This document shows positions 7,060 through 60,804 of a stretch of DNA of 64,000 bases, piece after piece. Source of the DNA: Macrostomum hystrix (taxonomy: Eukaryota; Animalia; Platyhelminthes); the NCBI GenBank assembly GCA_950097015.1, contig CATNEN010000001.1:5828001-5892000 (forward strand), given 5' to 3'. The notes below the pieces were generated by a model. That model searched no databases. It was not told where the DNA came from and saw only the letters and a program-made list of their open reading frames with translations. The position numbers were made by a program, and so were the translations under genes. The stretch's first letter is position 1, and every line of letters begins with the position of its first letter.

Positions 7060-10000
7060 TTAATTTCCAGAGCTTGTCGAATTACTTGACTTGCTGTGCT
7101 GTATTAGCCACTGCAGCGTGATGTCTGAAAAGTAGAACCTTTTTATAATATATCGTAACAACTTGCATAACTGCTTAACAGCGTCATAAGTGAACCGAAC
7201 TGTGTAAACTGTGAGATGTAGGTAGAGTGGAAAGTAGTCTGTGAGATGTAGGTAGAGTGGGGAGTAGTCTGTGAGATGTAGGTAGAGTGGGGAGTAGTCT
7301 GTGAGATGTAGGCAGAGTGGGGAGTAGTCTGTGAGATGCAGGCAGAGTGGGGAGTAGTCTGTGAGATGCAGGCAGAGTGGGGAGTAGTCTGTGAGATGTA
7401 GGCAGAGTGGGGAGTAGTCTGTGAGATGTAGGCAGAGTGGGGAGGAGTCTGTGAGATGTAGGCAGAGTGGGGAGGAGTCTGTGAGATGTAGGCAGAGTGG
7501 GGAGGAGTCTGTGAGATGTAGGCAGAGTGGGGAGGAGTCTGTGAGATGTAGGCAGAGTGGGGAGGAGTCTGTGAGATGTAGGCAGAGTGGGGAGGAGTCT
7601 GTGAGATGTAGGCAGAGTGGGAAGCAGTCTGTGAGATGTAGGCAGAGTGGGGGAGTAGTCTGAGAGATGTAGGCAGAGTGGGGAGCAGTCTGTGAGATGC
7701 AGGTAGAGAGGAAAGGAGTCTGTGAGATGTAGGCAGAGTGGGGAGTAGTCTGTGAGATGTAGGCAGAATGGGGAGGAGTCTGTGAGATGTAGGCAGAATG
7801 GGGAGGAGTCTGTGAGATGTAGGCAGAATGGGGAGGAGTCTGTGAGATGTAGGCAGAGTGGGAAGCAGTCTGTGAGATGTAGGCAGAGTGGGGAGTAGTC
7901 TGTGAGATGTAGGCAGAATGGGGAGGAGTCTGTGAGATGTAGGCAGAGTGGGAAGCAGTCTGTGAGATGTAGGCAGAGTGGGGAGTAGTCTGTGAGATGT
8001 AGGCAGAGTAGGGAGTAGTCTGTGAGATGTAGGCAGAGTGGGGAGTAGTCTGTGAGATGTAGGCAGAGTGGGGAGTAGTCTGTGAGATGTAGGCAGAGTA
8101 GAGAGTAGTCTGTGAGATGTAGGCAGAGTGGGGAGTAGTCTGTGAGATGTAGGCAGAGTGGGGAGTAGTCTGTGAGATGTAGGCAGAGTAGGGAGCAGTC
8201 TGTGAGATGCAGGCAGAGTGGGGAGCAGTCTGAAAGACAGGTAGAGTTGATAAACTCGTGAGATGCAGGTTAGGTGAAGTCAAGTAAAGCTTTTTACTAA
8301 GTCATGAACTCACCAATGTTCTCTTTTTCCTTGCAGCTAATCGAGTAGCAGCACACCTCCCGATCGGTGATATTGCCCAGGCTAAGCCTGTCAATCAATT
8401 CTCGTTCATCCAATGCCGAGTCTAAATCTCTTTTGTTGCCCAGAACTAGCACAGGAATGCCTTGCAGTTGCGGCTTGTCTAACAAATGGTGCAACTCATT
8501 CCTGGCTGCTTCAATTTTGTCACGATCTGCAGCATCCACCATGTAGACAATGGCATTGACTCCGCGACAGTAGCGCTCCCACATGCTGCGAAATCTGGGC
8601 TGGCCACCAATGTCCCATAATTTGATGGTCACACTGCCTTTAGTGATCTTGCGCATGTTGAAACCAACCGTTGGGATCATGTCCTCTGTGAACTGGCCAG
8701 ACTGTGGTAGATAAAATAGGATATTGGTAACAAGCTGGGAGATTGTCCATGGTAGCAAAAGTGAAAAAGATATTTTTAGAAGAAAAAGATTTTTTTCCAA
8801 ATGCACAGCTATTCAATTTTATTATTTTTTACCTGGATTTTTTTCACAATCCGCATGTGTTTTTTTTACATTTCAGGGATCACAACTTATGTAAAGAAGC
8901 AATAGTGTATAAACCAGGCTTATTTGATTCATTAGGCCTAGGCAAAATGAATTGAATAGCTGACCTACTTTCCTGTCTTGAACTCCAAACTAACCAAGCT
9001 ACTCCTTCAGCTTTATGTATTTTTCATTTAAATAATTTCACACCAAAGTGGATAAAGGATCCTTTTTGACTTTGAAGAACAGTACTGAAATGTTAAATAG
9101 CATAATCATAGTAAACCCCCTACCCTTAATTAACAATGATTTACTGTATGTATTTCTGCCATTCAAAAGATCATAAAGAAAGCTGATTTAGGCCTACATG
9201 TGATTTAACAAGCAACTGGTTTCATTTGACAGGTAATTTGATTACACACATTGACAACTTTTTGTATTATAATATTCTAATCTGATATTTGATTGTTTGA
9301 TAATAACAAAACAAAAAGAAATAGAGTGATTTATTTTAAACTGTAAGTTTGAAATATGATTTTAAACACACTTTTCCCTCTCGTGTATCTTCCTTATGGT
9401 TTTATGGGCACCATAACAAATTTCATGGATTGTAAACTAAAGGAATGCCAATGCACGCAACTGATTGTAGGCCTACCAATATGCACATGCCACCTATGTG
9501 ACTAAAGTATAGCTGGGGATAATGAAGCATCTTCAATAAGTTTTTTAACAATTTTTGTTAATAAAAATGTTACAAAAACACTGTTAGCCTAGCAGTGTAA
9601 AATCAAAGGGTTACAATTACTTAGGTGGCAAATCACTTTGGCAACAAGTCAATTCGGCAAATTGCTTTAGTGATAAGTTTTGATCACATAGGTGACAAAA
9701 TGATCAATTGTTGACCATTTAATTACAGGCGATAATTGTACTTTAAAATGAGTATGAAAGTACCATCTGCATCAGGCCACCTAATTCAAGCTCTGGGCAG
9801 AGCACAAACAAGGTGAACAGTCAAAATGTTCACTCCTAGAGGCTTGTAGGTAGTCATCTTCATGGACCTTATTTCTAACTCTAACTAGCGTGATCTAACA
9901 ACGTCTAACACACTAGCATGATCTGAAACTTTGTGCATGATCAACTCTAAGGCCTATACAAATAGTTTTAATATAAACCTTTTAACATTAAAAAATGAAA

Positions 10001-10283
10001 TATTTTATCAACTTTGTTTTATGATCAAGTTGGGTATAAGTATTGCCTGCAATTAATTGTTGTCTAAGTGATGAAAACTTGTCGCCAAAGTCAATTTCCT
10101 AAAATGACTGTCGCCGAAGTGACTTGTTGCCAAAGTGATCGGTACCCAAATCAAACTTACAGCAATAACATTTACAAATGTAGTTTTTCCTGAATTCTGC
10201 AATCCAACAAGGGTAAGTTCCATCTCTTCTTTCCAGAACAAGCTTTTTATCCAATCCAAAATCCTTTGAACAAATGCAAACAT
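7060..10283 (-). CDS. ARL8: ADP-ribosylation factor-like protein 8 (lysosomal small GTPase), 191 aa, 3 exons
   Basis: Exons are 10283-10161 ([41 protein letters not shown]), 8701-8314 ([56 protein letters not shown]) and 7124-7060 ([13 protein letters not shown]..stop). All introns are GT-AG with consistent phases. The G1, G3 and G4 motifs and the Arl8 signature are present. Confidence 0.97.
7210..8235. repeat. 30-bp minisatellite filling ARL8 intron 2
   Basis: About 34 copies of GTCTGTGAGATGTAGGCAGAGTGGGGAGTA. ORF 7060..8283 is mostly this repeat. Confidence 0.97.
9608..10147. mobile_element. Non-autonomous DNA transposon (MITE) with 8-bp TSD in ARL8 intron 1
   Basis: Termini are GGG...CCC. 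AAATCAAA is duplicated at 9600-9607 and 10148-10155. Imperfect long inverted repeats are built from ~15-bp subunits: ATCACTTTGGCAACAAGTCA at 9632 and its reverse complement at ~10120-10139. Confidence 0.75.
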
Positions 10284-11343
10284 TGTTAAATTAATGCACT
10301 GTCAGTCGATGAAATTTGCGATTGAAATGCAGATCAAGGAAATTGTTTTTAGAAAATCGATAAAGGGCGAATAAGGTGAATTCAATTCTTAAAATCTAGG
10401 TGAACCCAGAATACTTGTCTTGTATTTAGATCAACCTGCTAAAAAGTTTCCGAGCTAAAATAGTAAAATATGTTGTCGGTGTAAGCTGTTTAATAAGTAC
10501 TTAACAAGCAAAGTTATCTTGATACTTTCCAGCTGCTTCTAGGAAAGAGTTACACTCGATAAAAGTTAAAAACCAGCTGATTTACTGAATTTCCGGATTT
10601 ATTGCGTGGTTACTGCATTTTATGATTAATTATAGGTTTGTAAAATCGTTCTTTATTCAATGTTTTGTAAACACTCGATTTTTAGACAGAGTAGACTATC
10701 TCAGAAACACGACTACTAATTTTTTAAAGCGTCTTGACCTGTGAGCAAATTATCAGTTCGTTAAGGGGCTAATGGAACGTTAAAAAACAAAACGAACGTG
10801 CTAATAAAAAACATGATAGTGCTGAGGTTAGCGATTTTTTTTCTGTCAATAATAACACACTTAAGTAGTTATACACTTTTATTTTTACTTAATGAGTTCA
10901 TTTTGCTATATCCGTATTTTAAATGAAATATTTAAATTTGGGTAATTTTTCTTGTTATATATGTTCTCAATCCTTTCATTATTCAGAGCCCACAGCCTCC
11001 ACTTTAGTAAAAAAGAAAACTTTTCAACTTCTTCACGGTAAAATCTAAATTTTAATACACAATCATTTTTTCGGCCTTTCGATTGAAACTTTTGCGTCAG
11101 CTCTTATGCTTGACAAGAGCTTTGTCTTTCTAGACACTGCAGCTGAGCTGGTCTATGGGTAATTAGCAAGACCTAATTTAGCGTCAGTGAGTGACAGTGA
11201 CATTGGGCTTTGTCTAATGTGACTTTTGCAACGGGCCTTGTAATTTTTTAAATCTAAATTAGGCCTACCTTCTAAATCTGAAAGGTCTGCTTTAGCAGAT
11301 TAAAGCCTAATTACCACGTGGATCTTAAGTCCTTCAAACGATA
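10284..11343. promoter_or_regulatory. Probable shared/bidirectional promoter region between ARL8 (-) and the ZDHHC gene (+)
   Basis: The divergent start codons are only ~1.06 kb apart. Inferred from geometry only; no specific motif was identified. Confidence 0.45.
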
Positions 11344-14300
11344 ATGTGTGCATGCAATTGCTCATCTAAAGCTATACCAGCAGTTGTTGCTTGGTCAATT
11401 TTGATAGTGTTTACTACACTATACTTTGTTTTTGTGTAAGTCAGTTTTATATGTGCTCTTTTTCTTGTAAATTACTTTTAGTAGCTTCGGAATACAAATA
11501 GTTTTTACTAAAAAATATTTTTTACTAGGCCTAAATAACATTTTTGTGAGAGGCCTATCATAATTTTTGTATTTAGTAAGGCTTTGCAAGTGTAGCCAGT
11601 CATTTTGGCTATTATCATTTTCAGCCATTACCATTCAGCCTGAATACAAGATGTGGTCTATAAAAAATGAGTTCAGGCTATTTTTTTTAAATTAGTGGGA
11701 GGTAAAATATTAATGTTTAAAATGATATTGTGATATATTATATTGCAAAACTTCTGGTTAAGATTTTGATTTTGGAGAACTTGTGTGTATGGCAGATATT
11801 TAACCAGTGTTTTAAGCACATATATGACATAAATTAACCTATAACTCTTTATGTTTTAATGTAATAGAAACTTTACATCTACTTAATTTAACAAAGTATC
11901 TGTTCATTTAACAAAACTGAGGGTAAATAATAATATATTATGAATTAACATATATTTAGTTTTATCTATTAAGGTCTATTAATTAAAGATAGACCTATTC
12001 AAAAAAGTCTCATGTATTTAATTAAGTAAGCTAGCTATATATAGGCCTACTCAGTTTCAAAATTTTGAATGGCTTTATATTTAATTATTTTTGTATTATT
12101 TTTTTGTTGTATTTTGTTCTTATCATCAAATTCATATTTAGTAAATCAAAGGCTAAAAAGACTTAACTACTTTAATATAAAAAACTCTGTGATGGACTGC
12201 AAAGTAAGAAAAAAATAAACTGTGCACTAATAGGTTTTGCATTCTAAATTAAAAATGCTAAATTCACTAAAAATAGTTGAAAAAGTTTGTGTTCCTAACA
12301 AAAACGAAAGTTCTTTGATCATCTAAAGTTTTATTGTCCTATTCAATACTTTGCCTGTCTTTTAGGAGAATTTTTCCTTAAGCAGAATTTATTATGTGTA
12401 GATAAAATAAACTATGTGCTGTTAAGTATTTGTAATTGTGTCAATTTTCCCTTATCATTCTGAAGCCATAATACATAAAATTATACCCTGATCAAGTGTG
12501 ATGCCACATTTGAAGTCTAACCCCCAATTGGCTACTTCTGAAATATTCTTCCCTCCACAATAACTAAGAAGAAAGGAAGGTTAGTTGCATATGCCTTAGT
12601 GTGCAGTCAATGAGATTTGAGCCATTGGCAAAGTTATTCTACATGGCTTCTATATAAAGCAGTTCAATTATTATCTGTCCTTTCTGAACTAGGTATTTTA
12701 TTCCCAACCAGAGAGCATACCTGTATTGTTATAATGCTCAGACTGACAAGAAAATTCAATTTTCATATTAGGTTTCAACAGATTCTTCCTTATTTCTTAT
12801 AATAAAGACAAAAAATTATTTAGATTAAAAAAATCTTGAGTTTGTACTATCTTTGAACGAAAAATCTAGAATTCCCTATTACTTGTGCCCAAAAATAAGC
12901 CCTATAGTATGTATTGTTAAGATAACAACATTGGAGTTTCAAAGAAAATTTCTATGTTTATGCTTTGTGTTTTGAGCACTTTAAGCTATTTTTTCAGCTA
13001 AAAAAATATAGATGAAGATCAACTGTAATGTAATCAATAAATTCTAAGCTTTGGTGGATTAAATTTATTCAGTTGTAAACTTAAGCTTCTAGTTTACAAC
13101 AAAACTTCCTATGTTTTTTTGTGATTGATGTTCATTTTCATAACTGATCAGTGACAAGTACTGATAAATATTTTTATACCATGTGATTTACAACCTACAC
13201 AGGTCACCATACCTGGCTCGCGAAGTAACTTTAGTCATCCCTATCCTGCAAGGCATTGCTGCATTCTTTGTTGTGGCCAATTTTGGTCGGGCCACATTCC
13301 TTGATCCCGGCACTTATCCGCAGGCGTTGCGCAATGAATCCGATGATGATGACGCCAAGGGTACTCTGTTTAAGAATGTAGAAATTCGTGGCTGCCAGTC
13401 TAAAATCAAATGGTGCTCCACTTGTCGGTTCTATCGCCCGCCAAGGTAATAACATGCGAAAATGTTTGACTTGATGAGTAGATTAAGATTTTAAGGTGCC
13501 TGTTGGGTGAGACGATTGGGATTTTAAGGTGCATGTTGGGTGAGAGGATTGGGATTTCAAAGTACATGTTGGGTGAGAGGATTGGGATTTTAAGGTGCAT
13601 GTTGGGTGAGAGGATTGGGATTTAAAGGTGAATGTGGATTGAGAGGATTGGAATTTTAAAGTGCATGATGGGTGAGGGGATTCTGATTTTAAAGTGCATG
13701 TTGGGTGAGAGGATTCTGATTTTAAAGTGCATGTTGGGTGAGGGGATTCTGATTTTAAAGTGCATGTTGGGTGAGGGGATTCTGATTTTAAAGTGCATGT
13801 TGGGTGAGAGGATTCTGATTTTAAAGTGCATGTTGGGTGAGAGGATTCTGATTTTAAAGTGCATGTTGGGTGAGAGGATTGGGATTTCAAAGTACATGTT
13901 GGGTGAGAGGATTGGGATTTTAAGGTGCATGTTGGGTGAGAGGATTGGGATTTAAAGGTGAATGTGGATTGAGAGGATTGGAATTTTAAAGTGCATGATG
14001 GGTGAGGGGATTCTGATTTTAAAGTGCATGTTGGGTGAGAGGATTCTGATTTTAAAGTGCATGTTGGGTGAGGGGATTCTGATTTTAAAGTGCATGTTGG
14101 GTGAGGGGATTCTGATTTTAAAGTGCATGTTGGGTGAGAGGATTCTGATTTTAAAGTGCATGTTGGGTGAGAGGATTTGGATTTCAAAGTGCATGTTGGG
14201 TGAGGGGATTCTAATTTTAAAGTGCATGTTGGGTGAGGGGATTCTGATTTTAAAGTGCATGTTGAGTGAGAGGATTGGGATTTTAAGGTGAATGTGGGGT

Positions 14301-17300
14301 GAGAGGATTTGGATTTCAAAGTGCATGTTGGGTGAGGGGATTCTGATTTTAATGTGCCTGTTGGATGATAGGATTGGGATTTTAAGGTGCCTGTTGGGTG
14401 AGAGGATTGGGATTTTAAAGTGCATGTTGGGTGAGAGGATTCTGATTTTAAAGTGCATGTTGGGTGAGGGGATTCTGATTTTAAAGTGCATGTTGGGTGA
14501 GAGGATTGGGATTTTAAGGTGCATGTTGGGTGAGAGGATTGGGATTTCAAAGTACATGTTGGGTGAGAGGATTCTGATTTTAAAGTGCATGTTGGGTGAG
14601 AGGATTGGGATTTAAAGGTGAATGTGGATTGAGAGGATTGGAATTTTAAAGTGCATGTTGGGTGAGAGGATTCTAATTTTAAAGTGCATGTTGGGTGAGA
14701 GGATTATGATTTTAAAGTGTATGTTGGGTGAGGGGATTCTGATTTTAAAGTGCATGATGGGTGAGGGGATTCTGATTTTAAAGTGCATGTTGGGTGAGAG
14801 GATTCTGATTTTAATGTGCATGTTGGGTGAGGGGATTCTGATTTTAAAGTGCATGTTGGGTGAGGGGATTCTAATTTTAATGTGCATGTTGGGTGAGGGG
14901 ATTCTGATTTTAAAGTGCATGTTGAGTGAGAGGATTGGGATTTTAAGGTGAATGTGGGGTGAGAGGATTGGGATTTCAAAGTGCATGTTGGGTGAGAGGA
15001 TTGGGATTTTAATGTGCCTGTTGGGTGAGAGGATTGGGATTTTAAGGTGCCTGTTGGGTGAGAGGATTGGGATTTTAAAGTGCATGTTGGGTGAGAGGAT
15101 TGGGATTTTAAGGTGAATGTGGGGTGAGAGGATTGGGATTTTAAGGTGAATGTGGGGTGAGAGGATTGGGATTTTAAGGTGAATGTGGGGTGAGAGGATT
15201 GGGATTTTAAGGTGAATGTGGGGTGAGAGGATTGGGATTTTAAGGTGAATGTGGGGTGAGAGGATTGGGATTTTAAGGTGAATGTGGGGTGAGAGGATTG
15301 GGATTTTAAGGCGAATGTGGGGTGAGAGGATTGGGATTTTAAAGTGCTTGTCGGGTAGAGGACTAGGATTTTAAACAGTCGAATTGAAGATGAAGAAAGG
15401 GATTTTAAGTTATCAATAGGAATAAAAGAATCGATATTTTTTATTTTGATTTTGATTTTAAACTGCCGTGTGGAATTTAAAGCGTTTGTAGGCATAAAAG
15501 CTTAAAATTTAAGTTAGACTTGATTTTAGAATACAGAAGAAAACGTGCACGAAAGAATAAATACTTTTTAATTATGAAATATCTTGCTATAGGTCTAGGA
15601 CAAAAATTTATAGATTTGCATTTATTATCCTCAAATCCAGGTGTTCTCACTGCTCGGCATGCGATCGATGCATTGACACCTTCGATCATCACTGCCCTTG
15701 GGTAAACAACTGCATCGGCCGACGCAATTATCGAGCCTTCTTTTTCTTCCTGGCATCGCTAACTGTGCACATTGTGTCGGTCTTGTCTGCTAGCATCTAT
15801 TTCGTTGTCATGCATAGCGAGGATCTGCGTCAAGTTGGCCCGATTGTTGGCATAGTGATCGTCTGCGTTGCCGGCTTACTTGTATTTCCCATCGCTGGAC
15901 TTACAGGATTTCATATCTACCTTATCAGCAAGGGTGTCACCACAAATGAACAGGTGCGTAGTGTTAAAGTAAAACAGGTTTCTCTGTGTTCAGTGTCTAA
16001 CAGGTTTCTCTGTGTTCAGTGTCTAACAGGTTTCTCTGTGTTCAGTGTCTAACAGGTTTCTCTGTGTTCAATGTCTAACATGTTTCTCTGTGTTCAGTGT
16101 CTAACATGTTTCTCTGTGTTCAGTGTCTAACAGGTTTCTCTGTGTTTAGTGTCTAACAGGTTTCTCTGTGTTCAGTGTCTAACAGGTTTCTTTGTGTTCA
16201 GTGTCTAACAGGTTTCTACGTATCCTGTGTCTAACAGGTTTCTCTGTGGTCAGTGTCTAACACGATTCTCTGTGTTCAGTGTCTAACATGTTTCTCTGTG
16301 TTCAGTGTCTAACATGTTTCTCTGTGTTTAGTGTCTAACAGGTTTCTCTGTGTTCAGTGTCTAACAGGTTTCTTTGTGTTCAGTGTCTAACAGGTTTCTA
16401 CGTATCCTGTGTCTAACAGGTTTCTCTGTGGTCAGTGTCTAACACGATTCTCTGTGTTCAGTGTCTAACATGTTTCTCTGTGTTCAGTGTCTAACATGTT
16501 TCTCTGTGTTCAGTGTCTAACAGGTTTCTACGTATCCTGTGTCTAACAGGTTTCTACGTATCCTGTGTCTAACAGGTTTCTACGTATCCTGTGTCTAACA
16601 TGTTTCTTTGTGTTCAGTGTCTAACAGGTTTCTACGTATCCTGTGTCTAACAGGTTTCTCTGTGGTCAGTGTCTAACACGATTCTCTGTGTTCAGTGTCT
16701 AACATGTTTCTCTGTGTTCAGTGTCTAACATGTTTCTCTGTGTTCAGTATCTGATATTCATTGCTTTACAGAAATATAACTACTTAAAGTTACTAAATGA
16801 AAGTAAACAGTCAGTTTTAAGCCCAGTTAAGCGTACATTGGAGCATTGGGACGCTTAACATGGGCTCAACAGTTAAACACGCGCTGCGCAAATTAAATTA
16901 TCGCTTTTCGCTGAAGTTTAAATTAGCTAGTTAAGATTATTAGTAAGGCGATAAGGTTGCGATATATATACAGTACTCAAAATTCTATATATTATATGCA
17001 GAAAAAAGAATTTATATGCACTTTTTTACGTTTCAAAATGCAGTCGCAGTGGATTATAAAATTTGTTGACAAAGTATTAAAATACTTTTAAGTGACACAA
17101 ACCTTCTTTAAGGCCAGATAAAATTTTTTTTCTCAAAGCTTCTCGTGTTGTATACTAATATCTCAGATATTGAGTTCACTCATCCGGATTCTCAGATTGA
17201 GTCTGTCACTCATCCAGATTCTCAGATTGAGTCTGTCACTCATCCAGATCCTCAGATTGAGTCTGTCACTCATCCAGATCCTCAGATTGAGTCTGTCACT

Positions 17301-49000: not shown

Positions 49001-52000
49001 TGAACAGCCGTACGCAGCCTTCAGATGCGCCGCACAATAGCTGCGGCTGTGCTGTCGGCTGCACATCTGGCTCTATTGGGGCGCTTTGGTACACTTTGGG
49101 GGCTTGTCGTGCAATTCACGCCCTTGAGGGCCAACCTCCAAGGCACAGTGAGAGTATGCACTGCCTGACAATTAGAAAGTCAGGGCAGACGTACACACCC
49201 TGAGTGCGTGTGTGCTCGGGAGTCAGCGAGATAGGCAGAATTGCCTCCTCGCTGTCTGCAGGTCTAGTGACAACTATTGTGCGATTGCCTGCAGCCCTCC
49301 TGCAATAATTATTATTTTTAATATTATAGGCGACTTTCTTTGAAAAACTCCCGAAAGCCACTCACCCGCAATTTCCATTGTACTCAAACTTGCCCTGATT
49401 GAGTTGCATAGCCAAATCGGGCGTCTGAAAGTTAAGCGCCACCATCTGGCAGCCGGCGTTCCAAAAGATTTGCGGCATAAAATTGCTGGAGTCGACCCGG
49501 TTGCCGCGCGGATAAATGCGGCTCATCTGGCGCTTGTTGTAGCTAGATTTTTGTGCAAGTTTTCATTCAGCTTGGTTAAGGAAAACTGCTTGTTTAGAAG
49601 CTTCGGTGGCTACTTATAGTAGAGTTGGCAGGATTTTATTGAAATGATTTTATTGCGCAAGATTCCATTGGCTATTATTAACTAATTGATTAAAAGGCAT
49701 AGGAAAACAACACAGCATATTCAATTGTTTAGCATTTAAAAACTAAAAACCAGGCAACTACGGATAGTTAGGATTAAGCACTAGCAAGGTAACGCAAGAA
49801 AAAAACTGAAAAAAGGATACGCCACGAAATCTGTGACCGATTTCTTGATGTAGCCAAGAGCGACACTTTCGTTGTAGGAAGACATGTGAAAGTGCTTGTT
49901 AACTTCTACAATTTTGTTTTTTATGATTTTTTATTCATACTTTTGTAAAAGTTTCAAACTTACTTTGCGACACAAAACTATTTACACATACAAAGATTAT
50001 TAGATTTCTTTTGTTTTTAACTTTAGTTTGTGTGGCATATTCTTTGCAAAAATACCAATCTAGGTCTAGCATCTACGATGACAACACAGCACAGTTACTA
50101 AAGGAAAATGAAAGGTAAATATGCATACGCGCTTTGTAGATTTGCAAAAAGAAGAATAGAATTCAGCGGCATCCTTTGAAGACAAGAATTCAGCGGCATC
50201 CTTTGAAGATAAGAATTCAGCGGGATCCTTTGTAGACAAGAATTCAGCGGCATCCTTTGAAGATAAGAATTCAGCGGCATCCTTTGAAGACAAGAATTCA
50301 GCGGCATCCTTTGAAGATAAGAATTCAGCGGCATCCTTTGAAGATAAGAATTCAGCGGCATCCTTTGAAGATAAGAATTCAGCGGCATCCTTTGAAGACA
50401 AGAATTCAGCGGCATCCTTTGAAGATAAGAATTCAGCGGGATCCTTTGTAGACAAGAATTCAGCGGCATCCTTTGAAGACAAGAATTCAGCGGCATCCTT
50501 TGAAGACAAGAATTCAGCGGCATACTTTGAAGACAAGAATTCAGCGGCATCCTTTGAAGACAAGAATTCAGCGGCATCCTTTGAAGATAAGAATTCAGCG
50601 GCATCCTTTGAAGACAAGAATTCAGCGGCATCCTTTGAAGATAAGAATTCAGCGGCATCCTTTGAAGATAAGAATTCAGCGGCATCCTTTGAAGATAAGA
50701 AGTCAGCGGCATCCTTTGAAGATGAGAAGCGAGCCGTATCTATTGAATATTAGAAATAAGCGGCATCCTTTGAAGACGAGAAGTGAGAATAAAAAGGGTC
50801 GAAATGTTTAGTAGCAGCTTTTGTTATACAGCAGATAGACAGCAGGTAAACATAATAACTGAAACAATGCGATGAGTACATGCCTAACTTTGAAGCACAT
50901 GCTTAATGCCACCGCATCTCATCGCGAGTACTGTTTAATAAATTGATCTTTACTGTTTAAAATCTACTAATGCTTTAACGATTTCTCGATACCAAAATGA
51001 ATTGATACTAAACACAGGAGTAACACAGCCCAGCGCTCATGCACTTTTCTAGATGGGATAACAACAGGGAAAAGAGGAAATCATAGCCAAGTATCCACTA
51101 AATGAAGAGAAAAAATAGGAAGGAGGGTGATTGACACTGGTGTACAACAGTTATCGATGTGCTTAATAACAAAGTCAATAGCTGGTAAATGAAAGGATAC
51201 TTTACAAATTCAATGGCCTCATTTCTTAGATAGCCAAGACCCACAGTCTCAGAGTAAGAGGACATGTGGTGATGGATGTTCTCCTCTGGAAGTGGCGCAT
51301 ATTTTAAAGAAAAACTAAATGATAGTTAATAAATTAACAAACCCAATATAATAATGACAAGATTTGAAGTTTAAGTAAAGCAATTTTATTTAGCTCAACA
51401 AAAAAGCATTACCGTCGGCAATATCAAAGCCTTGAAATTTCACAGGCTGGGCATAGTTGACCATGGCCGATAGTACTGGATGAATATTGGTGGTGGCGCC
51501 GGTGTAGTGGTACTGGGCTAGCAGGCCCTGCTCTTCCTCGGCGCTTAAAGTACCCTGCGAAAGAAGAAACATTAAGTGATTAGCTATCCTGATATTAAAA
51601 TGAAAATGCATTCCAGGAATGAACGCTATGAATGACGAAACTGAGATGACATCTAACCAATTCAGGGGGGTGAGTGGCTGTGCGATCTAACGCGTTTGCC
51701 TCTCACGAAAGTCCATGAGCTCGATTCCGCGGCGTGCAATTTACGCCTTCGAGGGCCAACCTCCAAGGCGCACTGAGAGTGTACACTGCCTGACGATGAG
51801 AAAGTCAGGGCAGATCTACAAAACCTGAGTGCGTGTGTGCTTAGGAATGAGCGAAATGGACAGATAACTAAGAGACAATGTACCTTCGGCTTGGCTAGGG
51901 GTGCCTCGTCGACTCCAACGTCGACATTGACAGCGGCTGCCGCGGCGGCAGCAATAGGCCCCGGAGTAGCAGGCTGTTGTCCATTGTAGTTGCTATTGTT

Positions 52001-55000: not shown

Positions 55001-58000
55001 AATTGACACCGATGATTGAGGATATATGTGATGTGTTGGGTCATTGAACAATAGGGATTAAAGAGGGAACAATGGGACTATTAGGGAATCTTGGAAATGA
55101 TGGATTATTTGGAAATGAAGGAAAATGGGATTGTTGGGTAATCTAAGAAACTAGTGATTATTATTTAATCTAGGAAAATAGGGATCATTTGGGAATATAG
55201 GAAAATATGAATTATTGGGGAATCTTGTAAAGAAGGGATTATTAAGGGAATCTAGGAAATAATGGATTATTAGGGAATCTAGGAAATGATGGATTATTTA
55301 CGGAATCTAGGAAATGATGGATTATTAGGGAATCTAGGAAATGATGGATTATTAGGGAATCTAGGAAATAATGGATTATTAGGGAATCTAGGAAATAATG
55401 GATTATTAGGGAATCTAGGAAATAATGGATTATTAGGGAATCTAGGAAATAATGGATTATTAGGGAATCTAGGAAATAATGGATTATTAGGGAATCTAGG
55501 AAATAATGGATTATTAGGGAATCTAGGAAATAATGGATTATTAGGGAATCTAGGAAATAATGGATTATTAGGGAATCTAGGAAATAATGGATTATTAGGG
55601 AATCTAGGAAATAATGGATTATTAGGGAATCTAGGAAATAATGGATTATTAGGGAATCTAGGAAATAATGGATATTTAAGGGAATCTAGGAAATAATGGA
55701 TTATTAGGGAATCTAGGAAATAATGGATTATTAGGGAATCTAGGAAATAATGGATATTTAAGGGAATCTAGGAAATGGTGGACTATTAGGGAATCTAGGA
55801 AATAATGGATTATTAGGGAATCTAGGAAATGATGGATTATTAAGGAATCTAGGAAATGATGGATTATTTAAGGAATCTAGGAAATGATGGATTATTAGGG
55901 AATCTAGGAAATAATGGATATTTAAGGGAATCTAGGAAATGGTGGACTATTAGGGAATCTAGGAAATGATGGATTATTAAGGAATCTAGGAAATGATGGA
56001 TTATTTAAGGAATCTAGGAAATGATGGATTTTTTCGGAATCTAGGAATGATGGATTATTAACGGAATCTAAGAAATGATGGATTATTAAGCAATCTAGGA
56101 AATGATGGATTATTTACGGAATCTAGGAAATGATGGATTATTTACGGAATCTAGGAAATGATGGATTATTAGGGAATCTAGGAAATGATGGATTATTAAG
56201 GAATCTAGGAAATGATGGATTATTTACGGAATCTAGGAAATGATGGATTATCCATCTAAGAAATGATGGATTATTAAGGAATCTAAGAAATGAGAGATTA
56301 TTGGGAAATATAGGAAAATGAAGATTTTTGGGGAATCTAGAAAAATGGGGATTATTGGGGCATCTAGGAACTAAGGATTATTGGGTTGGAAATCCCATCC
56401 GAAATAATTGGGTAATCTAGAAATTCGAATTATTGAGGAATCTAGAAAACAAGGGATTATTAGAGAATCTAGGATAAATATGGGTCTATTTCGGAACATA
56501 GGAAAATTATAAAATTACTAGGAAATCTAGGCGAAATATGTCATATTTTTGGAACTTAAAAGCAATGGGATTACTACGAGTAACGACATTTCAAATTTTA
56601 ATAAAAAACAACATTTATTATCTTACCTTCCCAGACGGCAGGCCCAAATCTTTCAAAGTTTGAAAAATAATCTTCTCAGTCTTGCCAGATGCGAAAGTTT
56701 TACTAATCACTCGAACAGGAATGCAATTGTTGGCATTGACTGAGAAACAGAGCTTCATCCAGCTGAAATTCAACATTTAATAGCTATGTTTGGATGAAAA
56801 AAATAAATTTGTACAAGTTTAGCACAAAACATTTGAGGAACGGGCCCAGGCAGACAGGCGCACAACTCACTGTTTTCGAAGCTGAGTCATGGGGCAAACA
56901 TTACTAGCCTTTGTGTTGTGAGTCAGCGGTCGCAGATCCTGAATCCAGGCCTGAATTGATGAGAATAATTGCAAAAAATATAATTTGAATTGTTAATTGC
57001 TGAAATGGTAAAATTGTAATAATTTTATCATAGAAAACATAAACTTAAAAATCTAAAAAAATATTGGTCTAGATTTTCTGACACAACAGGGGTGAGAAAT
57101 GAGTTTGAGTCGAGTGTAAATTAGACAGGGTAGAAATGGTAGACATGGTAAGTCAGGAAGACAGGGTAGATATGGGAGACATGGTAAGTCAGGAAGACAG
57201 GGTAGATATGGGAGACATGGTAAGTCAGGAAGACAGGGTAGACTAGGTAGATATGGTAGACAGGGTAGATAGGGTAGACAAGGTAGATAGGGTAGACAGG
57301 GTAGATAGGGTAGACAAGGTAGATAGGGTAGACAGGGTAGATAGGGTAGACACGGTAGATATGGTAGACAGGGTTGATATGGTAGACAAGGTAGATAGGG
57401 TAGACAGGGTAGATAGGGTAGACACGGTAGATATGGTAGACATGGTAAGTCAGGAAGACAGGGTAGATATGGGAGACATGGTTGATATGGTAGACAGGGT
57501 TGATATGGTAGACAAGGTAGATAGGGTAGACAGGGTAGATAGGGTAGACACGGTAGATATGGTAGACAGGGTTGATATGGTAGACAGGGTTGATATGGTA
57601 GAAAGGGTAGAAATGGTAGATAGGGTAGACAGGGTAGACAGGGAAGATAGGGTAGACAAGGTAGATAGGGTAGACAGGGTAGATAGGGAAGACAAGGTAG
57701 ATAGGGTAGACAGGGTAGATAGGGTAGACACGGTAGATATGGTAGACAGGGTTGATATGGTAGACAAGGTAGATAGGGTAGACAGGGTAGATGGGGTAGA
57801 CACGGTAGATATGGTAGACATGGTAAGTCAGGAAGACAGGGTAGATATGGGAGACATGGTAAGTCAGGAAGACAGGGTAGACTTGGTAGATATGGTAGAC
57901 AGGGAAGATAGGGTAGACAAGGTAGATAGGGTAGACAGGGTAGATAGGGTAGACAAGGTAGATAGGGTAGACAGGGTAGATAGGGTAGACACGGTAGATA

Positions 58001-60804
58001 TGGTAGACAGGGTTGATATGGTAGACAAGGTAGATAGGGTAGACAGGGTAGATAGGGTAGACACGGTAGATATGGTAGACAGGGTTGATATGGTAGACAA
58101 GGTAGATAGGGTAGACAGGGTAGATAGGGTAGACACGGTAGATATGGTAGACAGGGTTGATATGGTAGAAAGGGTAGAAATGGTAGATAGGGTAGACAGG
58201 GTAGATAGGGTAGACAGCGTAGATATGGTAGATATGGTAGACAGAATAGACTTTTAGATATGGTAGACAGGGTTGATATGGTAGAAAGGGTAGAAAGGGT
58301 AGAGAGGGTAGACATGGTAGACGGGGTAGATATGGTAGACAGGGTAGATATAGTAGATACGGTTTATCAGGTAGACGGGGTAGACGGTGTAGAAAAGAAG
58401 ACAGATAAGACAGGGAAAAGGTAGGTATAGCAGGCGGGATCAAAGTGAATGGAGAACTGAGACTGAGAGACAAGCACAGTTGAGACAGAACAGGCACTAG
58501 ATATCGCCTCGTCTCATTTGACGGCTAGTTAAAAAGCGAGCAAAAAACACACAATTTTAAAGAAAAAAAGTTTTGCTCGACATTGTAAAAGCCGGGACTC
58601 AAAGTCGGTGAGCACGCTTAGCAATCAGGATTCGGTCAGGGAGGATGGGGGTTGGTTGGGGATTCGAACGGAGGGGAGGAAGAGACTAGAAGTTAGTAAG
58701 ATTCTCTAATTTCACGCTTCAATAGCAAAACCGTGGCTAGCTTGACCTCGACTGCAAGTTGAATTCAGATTAAGCATTAACCCGCTTTGCCGTGTTACAT
58801 AATTTTATAACATCAATAGTACATTTTTTAGAACACTTCATCCAGTAATATAGGAGAGACTAGAGATGTGAATTTTCTTCAACTTATAAATCAATTTGAT
58901 TCAACTCAGGGATCTTTACTTTAAAACCACCATTGTAAAACCACCACCATTCCAGTCACTTAACTTTCCAGTCACTTAACTTTCCAGTCACTTAACTTTC
59001 CAGTCACTTAACTTTCCAGTCAATTCACTTTCCAGTCAATTCACTTTCCAGTCACTTAACTTTCCAGTCAATTCACTTTCCAGTCAATTCACTTTCCAGT
59101 CACTTAACTTTCCAGTCACTTAACTTTCCAGTCACTTAACTTTCCAGTCAATTCACTTTCCAGTCAATTCACTTTCCAGTCACTTAACTTTCCAGTCAAT
59201 TCACTTTCCAGTCACTTAACTTTCCAGTCAATTCACTTTCCAGTCAATTCACTTTCCAGTCACTTAACTTTCCAGTCACTTAACTTTCCAGTCACTTAAC
59301 TTTCCAGTCAATTCACTTTCCAGTCACTTAACTTTCCAGTCACTTAACTTTCCAGTCAATTCACTTTCCAGTCAATTCACTTTCCAGTCAATTCACTTTC
59401 CAGTCACTTAACTTTCCAGTCAATTCACTTTCCAGTCAATTCACTTTCCAGTCACTTAACTTTCCTGTCACTTAACTTTCCAGTCACTTAACTTTCCAGT
59501 CACTTAACTTTCCAGTCAATTCACTTTCCAGTCACTTAACTTTCCTGTCACTTAACTTTCCAGTCACTTAACTTTCCAGTCACTTAACTTTCCAGTCAAT
59601 TCACTTTCCAGTCAATTCACTTTCCAGTCACTTAACTTTCCAGTCAATTCACTTTCCAGTCAATTCACTTTCCAGTCACTTAACTTTCCAGTCACTTAAC
59701 TTTCCAGTCACTTAACTTTCCAGTCAATTCACTTTCCAGTCAATTCACTTTCCAGTCACTTAACTTTCCAGTCAATTCACTTTCCAGTCACTTAACTTTC
59801 CAGTCAATTCACTTTCCAGTCAATTCACTTTCCAGTCACTTAACTTTCCAGTCACTTAACTTTCCAGTCACTTAACTTTCCAGTCAATTCACTTTCCAGT
59901 CACTTAACTTTCCAGTCACTTAACTTTCCAGTCAATTCACTTTCCAGTCAATTCACTTTCCAGTCAATTCACTTTCCAGTCACTTAACTTTCCAGTCACT
60001 TAACTTTCCAGTCAATTCACTTTCCAGTCACTTAACTTTCCAGTCACTTAACTTTCCAGTCAATTCACTTTCCAGTCACTTAACTTTCCAGTCAATTCAC
60101 TTTCCAGTCACTTAACTTTCCAGTCACTTAACTTTCCAGTCAATTCACTTTCCAGTCACTTAACATCCCATCTATTTCATGAATGAATTTGCAGCTTATA
60201 ATGGGATTCAGATCAAGGTAAAAATAACTAACGAACCATCATGGACCTACCCTAATCCGAATGGGAATACGTTTTTTATAAGGATTATACTCGCATTACC
60301 TAATCAATCTAATTTAGTTCTCTTTGATCTAGAGTGAAATGAAAATGTCTAGTAGGGGTTAAAATAAGAACATCATTCAATCCAAATCTCAATTAATCAA
60401 TTTAAAATAAATCTGACAAGACATAGCAACAGGAAAGAAAGGAACAATATATAAACTGAATCACACTATCAATCTTTTTCAGTACTAATTTCAGCCTTAT
60501 CAGTTTGACATAGTCAGTGGTAAGAATTTGTTAATTCTAATTTAGTTAACAAATCGACAGTTATAGTTGGCATGGAATCTCTACAGCTGTTGAAAAACTC
60601 ACGAATACACAAAAAATAAATCTAGCGGAAAAAATGGACAAAAAATTATTCGCGGCAATCACTTACCATGGCCGTTTTCTCATCCTGAGCCACCATATGA
60701 GTGTAGACAATATTAACCAGATCTGTGCCAGAACAGATGGTTACTACCCGGTTGTCAAGGGCGCCAGTACCGCGCTCCGATAAATTGTTGATGATTTTGT
60801 CCTC
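40058..60804 (-). CDS. PLCB4: Phosphoinositide phospholipase C beta-4/norpA-like, 5'-partial (~1180 codons in window)
   Basis: Exons are 60804-60667, 56950-56871, 56762-56627, 54972-54705, 54142-53838 ([23 protein letters not shown] box), 53681-53602, 53079-52995, 52832-52742, 52308-51884 (X-Y linker), 51554-51413, [51285-51201 or 49905-49821], 49542-49366 ([35 protein letters not shown] box), 48678-48122 (C2), 47108-46688, 44597-44540, 43574-43152 (coiled-coil CTD) and 40126-40058 (..KPSTVV*). All phases are consistent. No N-terminal exons were found in the window. Confidence 0.95.
43650..44425. repeat. 24-bp minisatellite filling a PLC intron
   Basis: About 32 copies of AAGACGCTTCGAACTWCATYAMAC. 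Confidence 0.97.
45320..45905. repeat. ~37-bp minisatellite in a PLC intron
   Basis: About 16 copies of CCAGCCAGACCATAGAAAACACCCACCCACCCCAAAT. Confidence 0.95.
47225..47405 (+). mobile_element. SINE family A, partial copy
   Basis: GCGGTTATCGCGTTTGGCTCTCGCACCAAGGTCCCTGAGC..GCTTGTCGTGCAATTAACGCCC..GTACACTGCCTGACGATGAGAAAGTCAGGGCA. Confidence 0.75.
48820..49320 (+). mobile_element. Composite SINE: family B (tRNA-like head, CORE-like centre) joined to the 3' half of family A
   Basis: Head GTGGCGCCTAATGATTAGGGCGTCGGACTCGAAAATTGAAGGTCGGGGGTTCGATTACC, then GCAAGACACGTAACTCTGAATTGCTTCAGTTCACCTATCTG. The family A body runs from ~49095 to an AAT/TAT-rich tail. Confidence 0.7.
49574..49585 (-). other. 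U12-type (minor spliceosome) branch point TTTTCCTTAACC
   Basis: Consensus U12 branch site ~33 nt upstream of the AG at 49544-49543, with no polypyrimidine tract in between. Confidence 0.9.
49821..49905 (-). CDS. PLC-beta mutually exclusive exon B (85 nt), followed by a U12-type donor
   Basis: Encodes (E)[27 protein letters not shown](A). Acceptor AATTGTAG; donor GTATCCTTTT. Same length and phases as exon A. Confidence 0.85.
50160..50780. repeat. 27-bp minisatellite between the two mutually exclusive PLC exons
   Basis: About 21 copies of AAGAATTCAGCGGCATCCTTTGAAGAY, plus a degenerate copy at ~50760. Confidence 0.97.
51201..51285 (-). CDS. PLC-beta mutually exclusive exon A (85 nt), followed by a U12-type donor
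   Basis: Encodes (E)[27 protein letters not shown](N). Acceptor CCACTTCCAG; donor GTATCCTTTC. Confidence 0.9.
51670..51865 (+). mobile_element. SINE family A, internally deleted copy
   Basis: AACGCGTTTGCCTCTCACGAAAGTCCATGAGCTCGATTCCGCGGCG..GAGGGCCAACCTCC..GTACACTGCCTGACGATGAGAAAGTCAGGGCAG. Confidence 0.75.
53190..53522. repeat. 31-bp minisatellite in a PLC intron
   Basis: About 10 copies of GAGGATCTGAGAATCTGCCTAGCAACAATCT. Confidence 0.95.
54250..54600 (-). mobile_element. SINE family A, full-length copy in reverse orientation
   Basis: Reverse complement of the 60992-61320 and 36868-37195 copies, including the (AAT)n tail at ~54250. Confidence 0.8.
55245..56290. repeat. 27-bp minisatellite (GGGAATCTAGGAAATAATGGATTATTA) with degenerate flanks ~55050-56530
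   Basis: About 39 core copies in the PLC intron 54973-56626. Confidence 0.96.
57122..58390. repeat. 9-bp-based minisatellite (AGGGTAGAY/ATGGTAGAC) with higher-order blocks
   Basis: More than 130 degenerate 9-mers. The ORFs here are low-complexity artefacts. Confidence 0.95.
58950..60165. repeat. 16-bp two-variant minisatellite (CCAGTCA-CTTAA-CTTT / CCAGTCA-ATTCA-CTTT)
   Basis: About 75 copies of two interspersed unit types. Confidence 0.97.

Follow-up and report, generated by a model that had tools for sequence, protein, structure and literature searches.

Background

The exons 6a and 6b of the vertebrate JNK genes (MAPK8/9/10) were reportedly described by Letunic in 2002 as a pair with a U2-U12 hybrid intron. 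Such genes present a U2 intron, an alternative exon, a hybrid intron, a second alternative exon and a U12 intron, in this order, and splice sites of the U2 and U12 types are incompatible, so that mixed pairs are not spliced (Chang 2007, PMC1874599; PMC3584512). Genome-wide, five human clusters of mutually exclusive exons with U2/U12 incompatibility have been counted (0.79% of clusters; Hatje et al. 2017, PMC5740500), and alternative splicing involving U12 introns has been described as almost absent (PMC3584512, PMC5740500). Minor-intron genes make up 60% of the human PLC genes (PMC6865273). This work describes the same order of elements in a PLC-beta gene of the PLCB4/norpA class of the flatworm Macrostomum hystrix, located in a stretch of 64,000 nucleotides (nt) of contig CATNEN010000001.1 (assembly GCA_950097015.1, positions 5,828,001 to 5,892,000), which is referred to as the window and whose own numbering is used throughout. 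The gene probably carries a tandem-duplicated pair of mutually exclusive exons, here named A and B, in the Y half of the catalytic barrel, with U2/U12 incompatibility enforcing the choice between them.

Exon anatomy

The PLC-beta gene runs on the minus strand from about position 60800 to 43100, and its exons, each compared singly by its own coordinates with tblastn, match PLCB4-class proteins from the PH region to the C-terminal domain. The X and Y catalytic boxes, a C2 domain and the PLC-beta C-terminal region are all present, PLCB4 proteins are the best matches, and the Pfam family PF00387 matches the Y exon of the window (at the genome position corresponding to 49366..49542). The C2 exon is 97% identical to UniProt entries of Macrostomum lignano and 77-81% identical to PLCB4-named proteins of annelids, spiders and vertebrates. 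The norpA/insect framing of the initial annotation was wrong, given the 97% identity to M. lignano, and was not essential to its claim.

All elements of the exon cluster lie on the minus strand. The constitutive upstream Y-box exon (51413..51554; GTLSAEEEQ...FQGFDIAD) is preceded by the acceptor tttcgcag and ends in ...GATATTGCCGACG, followed by GTAATG; its final base, G, opens a split codon. The subsequent U2-type intron of 127 nt (51286..51412) has GTAATG as donor and the T-rich acceptor ...tttagtttttctttaaaatatgcgccacttccag, and neither a U12 donor nor a U12 branch motif was found in it. Alternative exon A (51201..51285, 85 nt) lies between the acceptor ...cacttccag and the donor GTATCCTTTC and encodes (E), 27 residues and (N), and alternative exon B (49821..49905, 85 nt) lies between the acceptor ...aaaattgtag and the donor GTATCCTTTT and encodes (E), 27 residues and (A). 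They are separated by a hybrid intron of 1295 nt (49906..51200), which starts with a U12-type donor, ends in a weak A-rich tract without a U12 branch site, and is predicted not to be spliced on its own. A U12-type intron of 278 nt (49543..49820) connects exon B to the acceptor of the constitutive downstream Y-box exon (49366..49542). Exon A shares this acceptor at 49543, and its donor thereby delimits an intron of 1658 nt.

Exons A and B align end to end, and the 9 bases 3' of each exon are identical. Both start in phase 1, with two bases completing a codon, and leave 2 nt of the next codon at their end. The core HMSSY..E..LGY is present in both translations. The two exons are hence neighbouring, homologous, equally long and in the same phase, and they code for the same segment of the protein, as expected of a mutually exclusive pair. 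As 85 mod 3 = 1, inclusion of both exons or of neither shifts the frame. Exon B occurs once in the whole genome (the window's own assembly, 220 Mb in 42 contigs). On a minus-strand reading, the coordinates, the 85-nt length, the equal phase, the paralogy and the translations of both exons agree with the initial annotation, as do the ordinary GTAATG donor after 51413 and the frameshift upon double inclusion or double skipping.

Splice signals

The 9-mer GTATCCTTT is found exactly twice in the window when both strands are counted (0.61 copies expected by chance), and these two copies are the 5' splice sites at the ends of exon A (51192..51200) and exon B (49812..49820). Both donors conform to the U12 GT-AG 5' splice site /GTATCCTT. 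Ahead of the shared downstream exon, TTCCTTAAC is the sole perfect branch site. It is part of a U12 branch-site consensus, TTTTCCTTAACC (49574..49585), which contains TCCTTAAC at 49575-49582, with A49576 as the predicted branch adenosine. The window holds three matches to TCCTTAAC, and by our own arithmetic the chance that one lies at most 60 nt from the shared acceptor is about 0.001. The run-up to this acceptor (49543) is A-rich (...gaatgaaaacttgcacaaaaatctag) and has no pyrimidine tract, unlike the eight other acceptors of the gene and in line with a U12-type 3' end. No U12 branch motif was detected in the last 60-70 nt 5' of exon A or of exon B.

The eight other introns of the gene have GTAAGT, GTGAGT or GTATGT donors and pyrimidine-rich acceptors, so the signals at exons A and B stand out within their own gene. 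The initial annotation had named a minor-intron donor behind both exons, a single downstream acceptor with a consensus U12 branch point and no pyrimidine tract, and alternative exons without a U12 branch site before them. The letters bear out each of these statements, and two features had been missed, namely the distance of 33 nt between branch point and acceptor and the weakness of the exon B acceptor.

Besides the branch site at A49576, a weak CTTGCAC motif is located 11 nt from the PLC acceptor, and it may be a candidate for the real branch site instead.

Elsewhere in the same genome, a prospero paralog (L012, contig 8) pairs GTATCCTTT with TTTCCTTAAC located 22-25 nt before candidate acceptors. 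Because of this spacing, long distances between branch site and acceptor may be usual in this genome.

Small nuclear RNAs of the minor spliceosome

The genome of the window encodes minor small nuclear RNAs (snRNAs). Searches with Rfam models scored U12 at 85.7 bits, U11 at 70.4 bits and U6atac at 47.5 bits, all above the cut-off, and the recognition boxes are intact: the U12 branch-site box GAGTAAGGAAAAT, the U11 5' end AAAAAGGG and the U6atac box AAGGAGAGA. U4atac gave no match in this genome at the default Rfam threshold. A full-length candidate of 35.6 bits, below the Rfam cut-off, is located on the minus strand of contig 34 (L010:1501-1646). Its CAGGGGAG and CCGUC (8+5 bases) are complementary to CUCCCCUG and GACGG of the U6atac of this genome, and it contains a stem-loop resembling a k-turn and, close to the 3' end, an Sm-like site, which makes it plausible as a U4atac. 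The earlier expectation that this animal retains a minor spliceosome is thus matched by three snRNAs above the Rfam cut-offs and one candidate. From these components and the splice signals we infer that the introns behind A and B are excised by the minor spliceosome in M. hystrix.

In four small sequencing runs from one study, 0.39-0.45 of the sampled words of the stretch were present, which is about the exon fraction by our own estimate. This hints that the runs are RNA, and has no bearing on the choice between A and B.

Alternative exons in other animals

The flatworm proteins contain the block encoded by these exons in two sharply distinct versions, an A type (SETVALGLMKNEAIEFVN) and a B type (NE.VALGLIK..C..FV.). 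The protein searches retrieved no Macrostomum transcript-derived fragments. In the M. lignano model A0A1I8JPU8 the upstream exon is joined straight to a B-type exon (FDIAE|...) in which 2 of 23 residues differ from exon B of the window. Annotated isoforms of equal length that differ only inside the block were found in Opisthorchis felineus (under one locus tag), two oysters and Ruditapes. Two entries of Mesocestoides corti swap the block and otherwise differ only by two small indels and one substitution next to the larger of these indels, and two entries of Schistocephalus swap the block and differ elsewhere too. A single version of the block was present in a starfish (16 isoforms), amphioxus and spiders. 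Judging from these annotated isoform pairs of relatives, a mature mRNA may contain exactly one of A and B, although one model of Hymenolepis microstoma (P0298, see below) has both. A natural truncated model (P0263) places the block at residues 513-563 of squid PLC21 (3QR0); a phmmer search of the PDB with the 27-residue exons gave no match, the queries being too short.

In maximum-likelihood trees of the block (27-29 residue columns), all flatworm A exons, including that of the window, form a clade (support 96/96-97). All B exons form a clade as well (96/89), which comprises cestodes, trematodes, the window, oysters, clams, a limpet, Chaetopterus and Lingula. This topology is suggestive, rather than conclusive, of a B exon that predates the divergence of flatworms, molluscs, annelids and brachiopods. 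The ortholog comparison that had been advised to date the duplication therefore points to a pair that is older and more widely distributed than was assumed.

Two gene models of flatworms look like annotation footprints of U12 signals. Model P0298 of Hymenolepis microstoma reads exon A, about 26 codons and exon B in a single frame, which would show the same exon order as in the window with a very short A-B interval. Model P0329 of Fasciolopsis has 11 extra codons (FLNSNTHAQTS) ahead of the downstream exon. Judging from the codons, its FLN stretch would fit TTYCTNAAY...AG, with the branch-site motif some 24 nt upstream. In addition, gene models of five fishes, an annelid, a limpet, H. microstoma and Opisthorchis viverrini read through into the intron with the end ...FVKYP(F/L/S), which corresponds to AA|GTATCC.

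Metagenome contigs were scanned with the degenerate pattern M-S-S-[FY]-x-E-x-x-[GA]-L-G followed by 32 bases and GTATCC. This yielded 87 matching stretches, with 82 matches counted in the 80 loci listed. Among these listed loci, about 78 of the 82 matches are true PLCB4 exons, nearly all of which continue as GTATCCTT though the pattern asked only for GTATCC. Most of the contigs are host DNA of symbiosis metagenomes with one exon between the flanking exons, and in these single-exon contigs a branch-site-like motif precedes the shared acceptor by 8-18 nt. One locus with an amniote-type PLCB4 block (L020, Ga0065711_1041474) may be human contamination and was left out of all comparisons. Altogether, fishes, annelids, molluscs, bryozoan-like hosts and flatworms have a U12-type intron behind this exon, and this distribution points to an ancestral U12 donor at this position.

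Four contigs carry an exon array. Contig L053, from a bivalve-like host, has an A-type exon (91 nt) followed by a B-type exon (85 nt). Three tandem exons of 85 nt are present in both L040 (L040:1-5498, JAAUXT010097852) and L078 (L078:1-5209, JAAUXW010366940), and two exons of 85 nt in L034 (L034:1-2383, JAAUYG010031263). In these arrays every exon is preceded by a pyrimidine-rich acceptor that lacks a U12 branch motif, and followed by GTATCCTT. The upstream donor is U2-type where it was seen, GTAAGT in L053 and GTGGGT in L040. In L034 and L040, where the downstream exon lies within the contig, TTCCTTAAC or GTCCTTGAC is located 8 nt before the shared acceptor. Four array exons fall outside the search pattern and were found by the protein motif alone, and because of this their GTATCCTT serves as an unbiased check. 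These contigs thus repeat the layout of the window, a U2 intron, an interval with a U12 donor and a non-U12 3' end between the exons, and a U12 intron. The exons of the three-exon array fall outside the spiralian B clade in the block tree, so this array is probably an independent expansion.

The claim of a hybrid A-B intron with a U12 donor and a U2 acceptor in a JNK-like layout, as put forward in the initial annotation, is supported by the anatomy of the locus, by the annotated isoforms of relatives and by the wiring in other genomes. On these grounds, the pair in the window appears to be a real and conserved member of the rare JNK-type class of U2/U12 incompatibility.

The other PLC-beta genes of the M. 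hystrix genome differ. Paralog L009 (contig 7, 7731800-7732800) has only an A-like exon, followed by a U2-type intron of 105 nt (GTACGC ... ccgccccactccgcccag, with a C-rich CAG end), and the equivalent position is occupied by a GTGAGA intron in four PLCB1-like paralogs. All five other PLC-beta genes therefore have a U2-type intron here, and among the PLC-beta copies of the genome the sole copy with two exons is the sole one that keeps the U12 signals. In L009, a possible remnant of a U12 signal, ATATCCTTG, occurs 11 nt 3' of the donor.

Proposed mechanism and alternative explanations

We propose that the exon just upstream of an ancient U12-type intron was duplicated together with its U2-type acceptor and its U12-type donor. 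For the upstream U2 donor, the acceptors of A and B would then be the only possible partners, and for the U12 donors of A and B the only partner would be the one U12 branch site, with its acceptor, ahead of the downstream exon. An A-to-B junction would combine a U12 donor with a U2 acceptor, and a transcript that skips both exons would combine a U2 donor with a U12 acceptor. Both combinations would be spliceosome-incompatible and would also break the frame, as each exon counts 85 nt. Because such mixed U2/U12 pairings would be incompatible and frame-shifting, the only productive mRNAs would be upstream-A-downstream, with B removed within the U12 intron of 1658 nt, and upstream-B-downstream, with A removed within a U2 intron of 1507 nt. 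Regulation may act on the contest of the good acceptor of A with the weak acceptor of B, or on the competition of two identical U12 donors for one branch site. The incompatibility itself would be what enforces the exon choice.

Several observations weigh against this proposal. The branch adenosine A49576 is 33 nt away from the 3' splice site, compared to 8-18 nt for the same intron in other taxa and to a published optimum of 11-13 nt between U12 branch site and acceptor (PMC3584512). The acceptor of exon B is A-rich, and for that reason it is a weak U2-type site and not a textbook one. The block trees rest on few columns, and exon B of the window is on their longest branch. The U12 donors on both exons in the named flatworm and oyster species are deduced from read-through models and metagenome contigs. 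Finally, the 85-nt length would allow frameshift and nonsense-mediated decay (NMD) alone to enforce exclusivity.

The last point leads to the alternative that survives best, although we consider it unlikely: the exons are true alternatives, the U12 donors are inherited baggage, and exclusivity is achieved mainly by frameshift, NMD and ordinary regulators. A length that is not a multiple of three suits this explanation, as do the paralogs of the genome, which show that the intron can turn U2-type. It does not account well for the perfect GTATCCTT on every alternative exon in all lineages seen, including the apparently independent three-exon array. Moreover, a U12 donor and a U2 acceptor do not pair according to established knowledge, so the incompatibility would hold whether it is selected or not, and one paralog without exon B has lost the U12 signals too.

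It is very improbable that both introns are removed by the major spliceosome, with GTATCC acting as a weak U2-type donor and the distant TTCCTTAAC remaining unused. The 33-nt spacing of the branch motif, the sub-threshold score of U4atac and the U2-type introns at this position in the five other PLC-beta genes would fit such splicing, but two donors that match at 9 of 9 positions and a branch motif that does likewise stand beside an acceptor without a pyrimidine tract. U11, U12 and U6atac are present with their pairing boxes intact, and the prospero paralog combines GTATCCTTT with TTTCCTTAAC at a comparably long distance of 22-25 nt before its acceptor.

That exon B is an unused relic here and exon A alone is spliced in is the least credible explanation: the A-rich acceptor without a pyrimidine tract and the longest branch in the block trees suit a relic, but the frame of exon B is open, its HMSS motif is intact, its donor is perfect, A0A1I8JPU8 of M. 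lignano uses a B-type exon with only the two differences in 23 residues, and B-type exons are retained across flatworms and molluscs.

Enforcement by U2/U12 incompatibility of the choice between A and B is therefore the explanation that we retain. Beyond the window, we put forward more tentatively, and with slightly more doubt than confidence, that the PLCB4 Y-box cluster is an ancient exon array, dating back at least to the ancestor of flatworms, molluscs, annelids and brachiopods and re-expanded independently elsewhere, in which every alternative exon brings a U12 donor of its own and a single U12 acceptor serves them all.

Repeats and neighbouring features

The hybrid intron contains a minisatellite of 23 units of 27 nt (50151..50776, minus strand), the only occurrence of this repeat in the 220-Mb genome. 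Read in the sense direction, each unit contains AAGGATGC, a motif that is complementary to the U12 5' splice site apart from a single G-U pair and that occurs in 19 copies compared to 0.9 expected. The energy of the duplex between minisatellite and U12 donor is better than that of shuffled controls (p 0.004-0.013). A role of the minisatellite as a conserved selector that pairs with the U12 donors was considered and rejected, as the other donors of the gene pair about equally well and the corresponding introns of L040, L078, L034 and L053 show no enrichment of the anti-5'-splice-site motif. For these two reasons it is treated as a lineage-specific curiosity outside the conserved mechanism.

Tandem repeats are unusually abundant in the window. 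Long coding-like minisatellite arrays with repetitive open frames on the minus strand are located at about 7060-8300, 13400-15500, 55150-56400 and 57050-58520. Read by eye, minus-strand open frames at about 8300-8812 and 10056-10301 resemble a small Arf-like GTPase encoded by a neighbouring gene.

Discussion

The isoforms that result from the exon pair are already annotated in public protein sets, and the incompatibility mechanism itself is not new. In the literature on norpA/PLCB4 combined with U12, minor introns or mutually exclusive exons, we found no description of such an exon pair, and the term PLCB has no occurrence in the text of PMC5740500. Until now, most of the evidence for U2/U12 incompatibility as a route to exclusivity came from JNK and a few human clusters. 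PLC-beta would be a second gene family with such wiring, kept across phyla and with up to three exons. This suggests that duplication of an exon ahead of a U12 intron readily gives rise to the arrangement, which is afterwards retained.

If the array is indeed ancient, it would be the oldest and most widespread natural exon choice that is enforced jointly by the major and the minor spliceosome. It would also offer a concrete selective reason for the retention of this U12 intron, and hence of the minor spliceosome, in these animals. The pair further suggests a function for two variants of the helix that adjoins the substrate-binding HMSS motif of PLC-beta, and the lineage-specific distant U12 branch sites bear on how the minor spliceosome gauges the distance between branch site and acceptor. 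M. lignano is tractable as a test system, as both RNA interference and transgenesis exist for this species.

Compared with the systems described before, the five human U2/U12 clusters (PMC5740500) belong to the same, rare mechanism class as the PLC-beta pair. The Drosophila prospero and Urp twintrons are alike in having alternative U2-type and U12-type signals in one gene region. However, they are nested introns that share an exon junction, whereas the PLC-beta locus consists of duplicated exons that each have their own U12 donor. Within the PLC family, the conserved U12 introns are constitutive in the single-exon lineages, whereas here one is shared by two donors.

The closest counterpart remains JNK, whose exons 6a and 6b have the same order of introns and exons as the pair in the window and, like it, represent a tandem exon duplication beside an old U12 intron. 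The two differ in distribution, as the JNK pair belongs to vertebrates and the Y-box pair to another gene family, in flatworms, molluscs and other invertebrates. The PLC-beta arrays reach three exons in one host (L040 and L078), unlike the JNK pair, and the 85-nt length of the PLC-beta exons in addition shifts the frame. In the JNK2 hybrid intron, an unusually long and conserved pyrimidine tract makes exon 6b the default (PMC1874599), whereas the tract before exon B of PLC-beta is A-rich.

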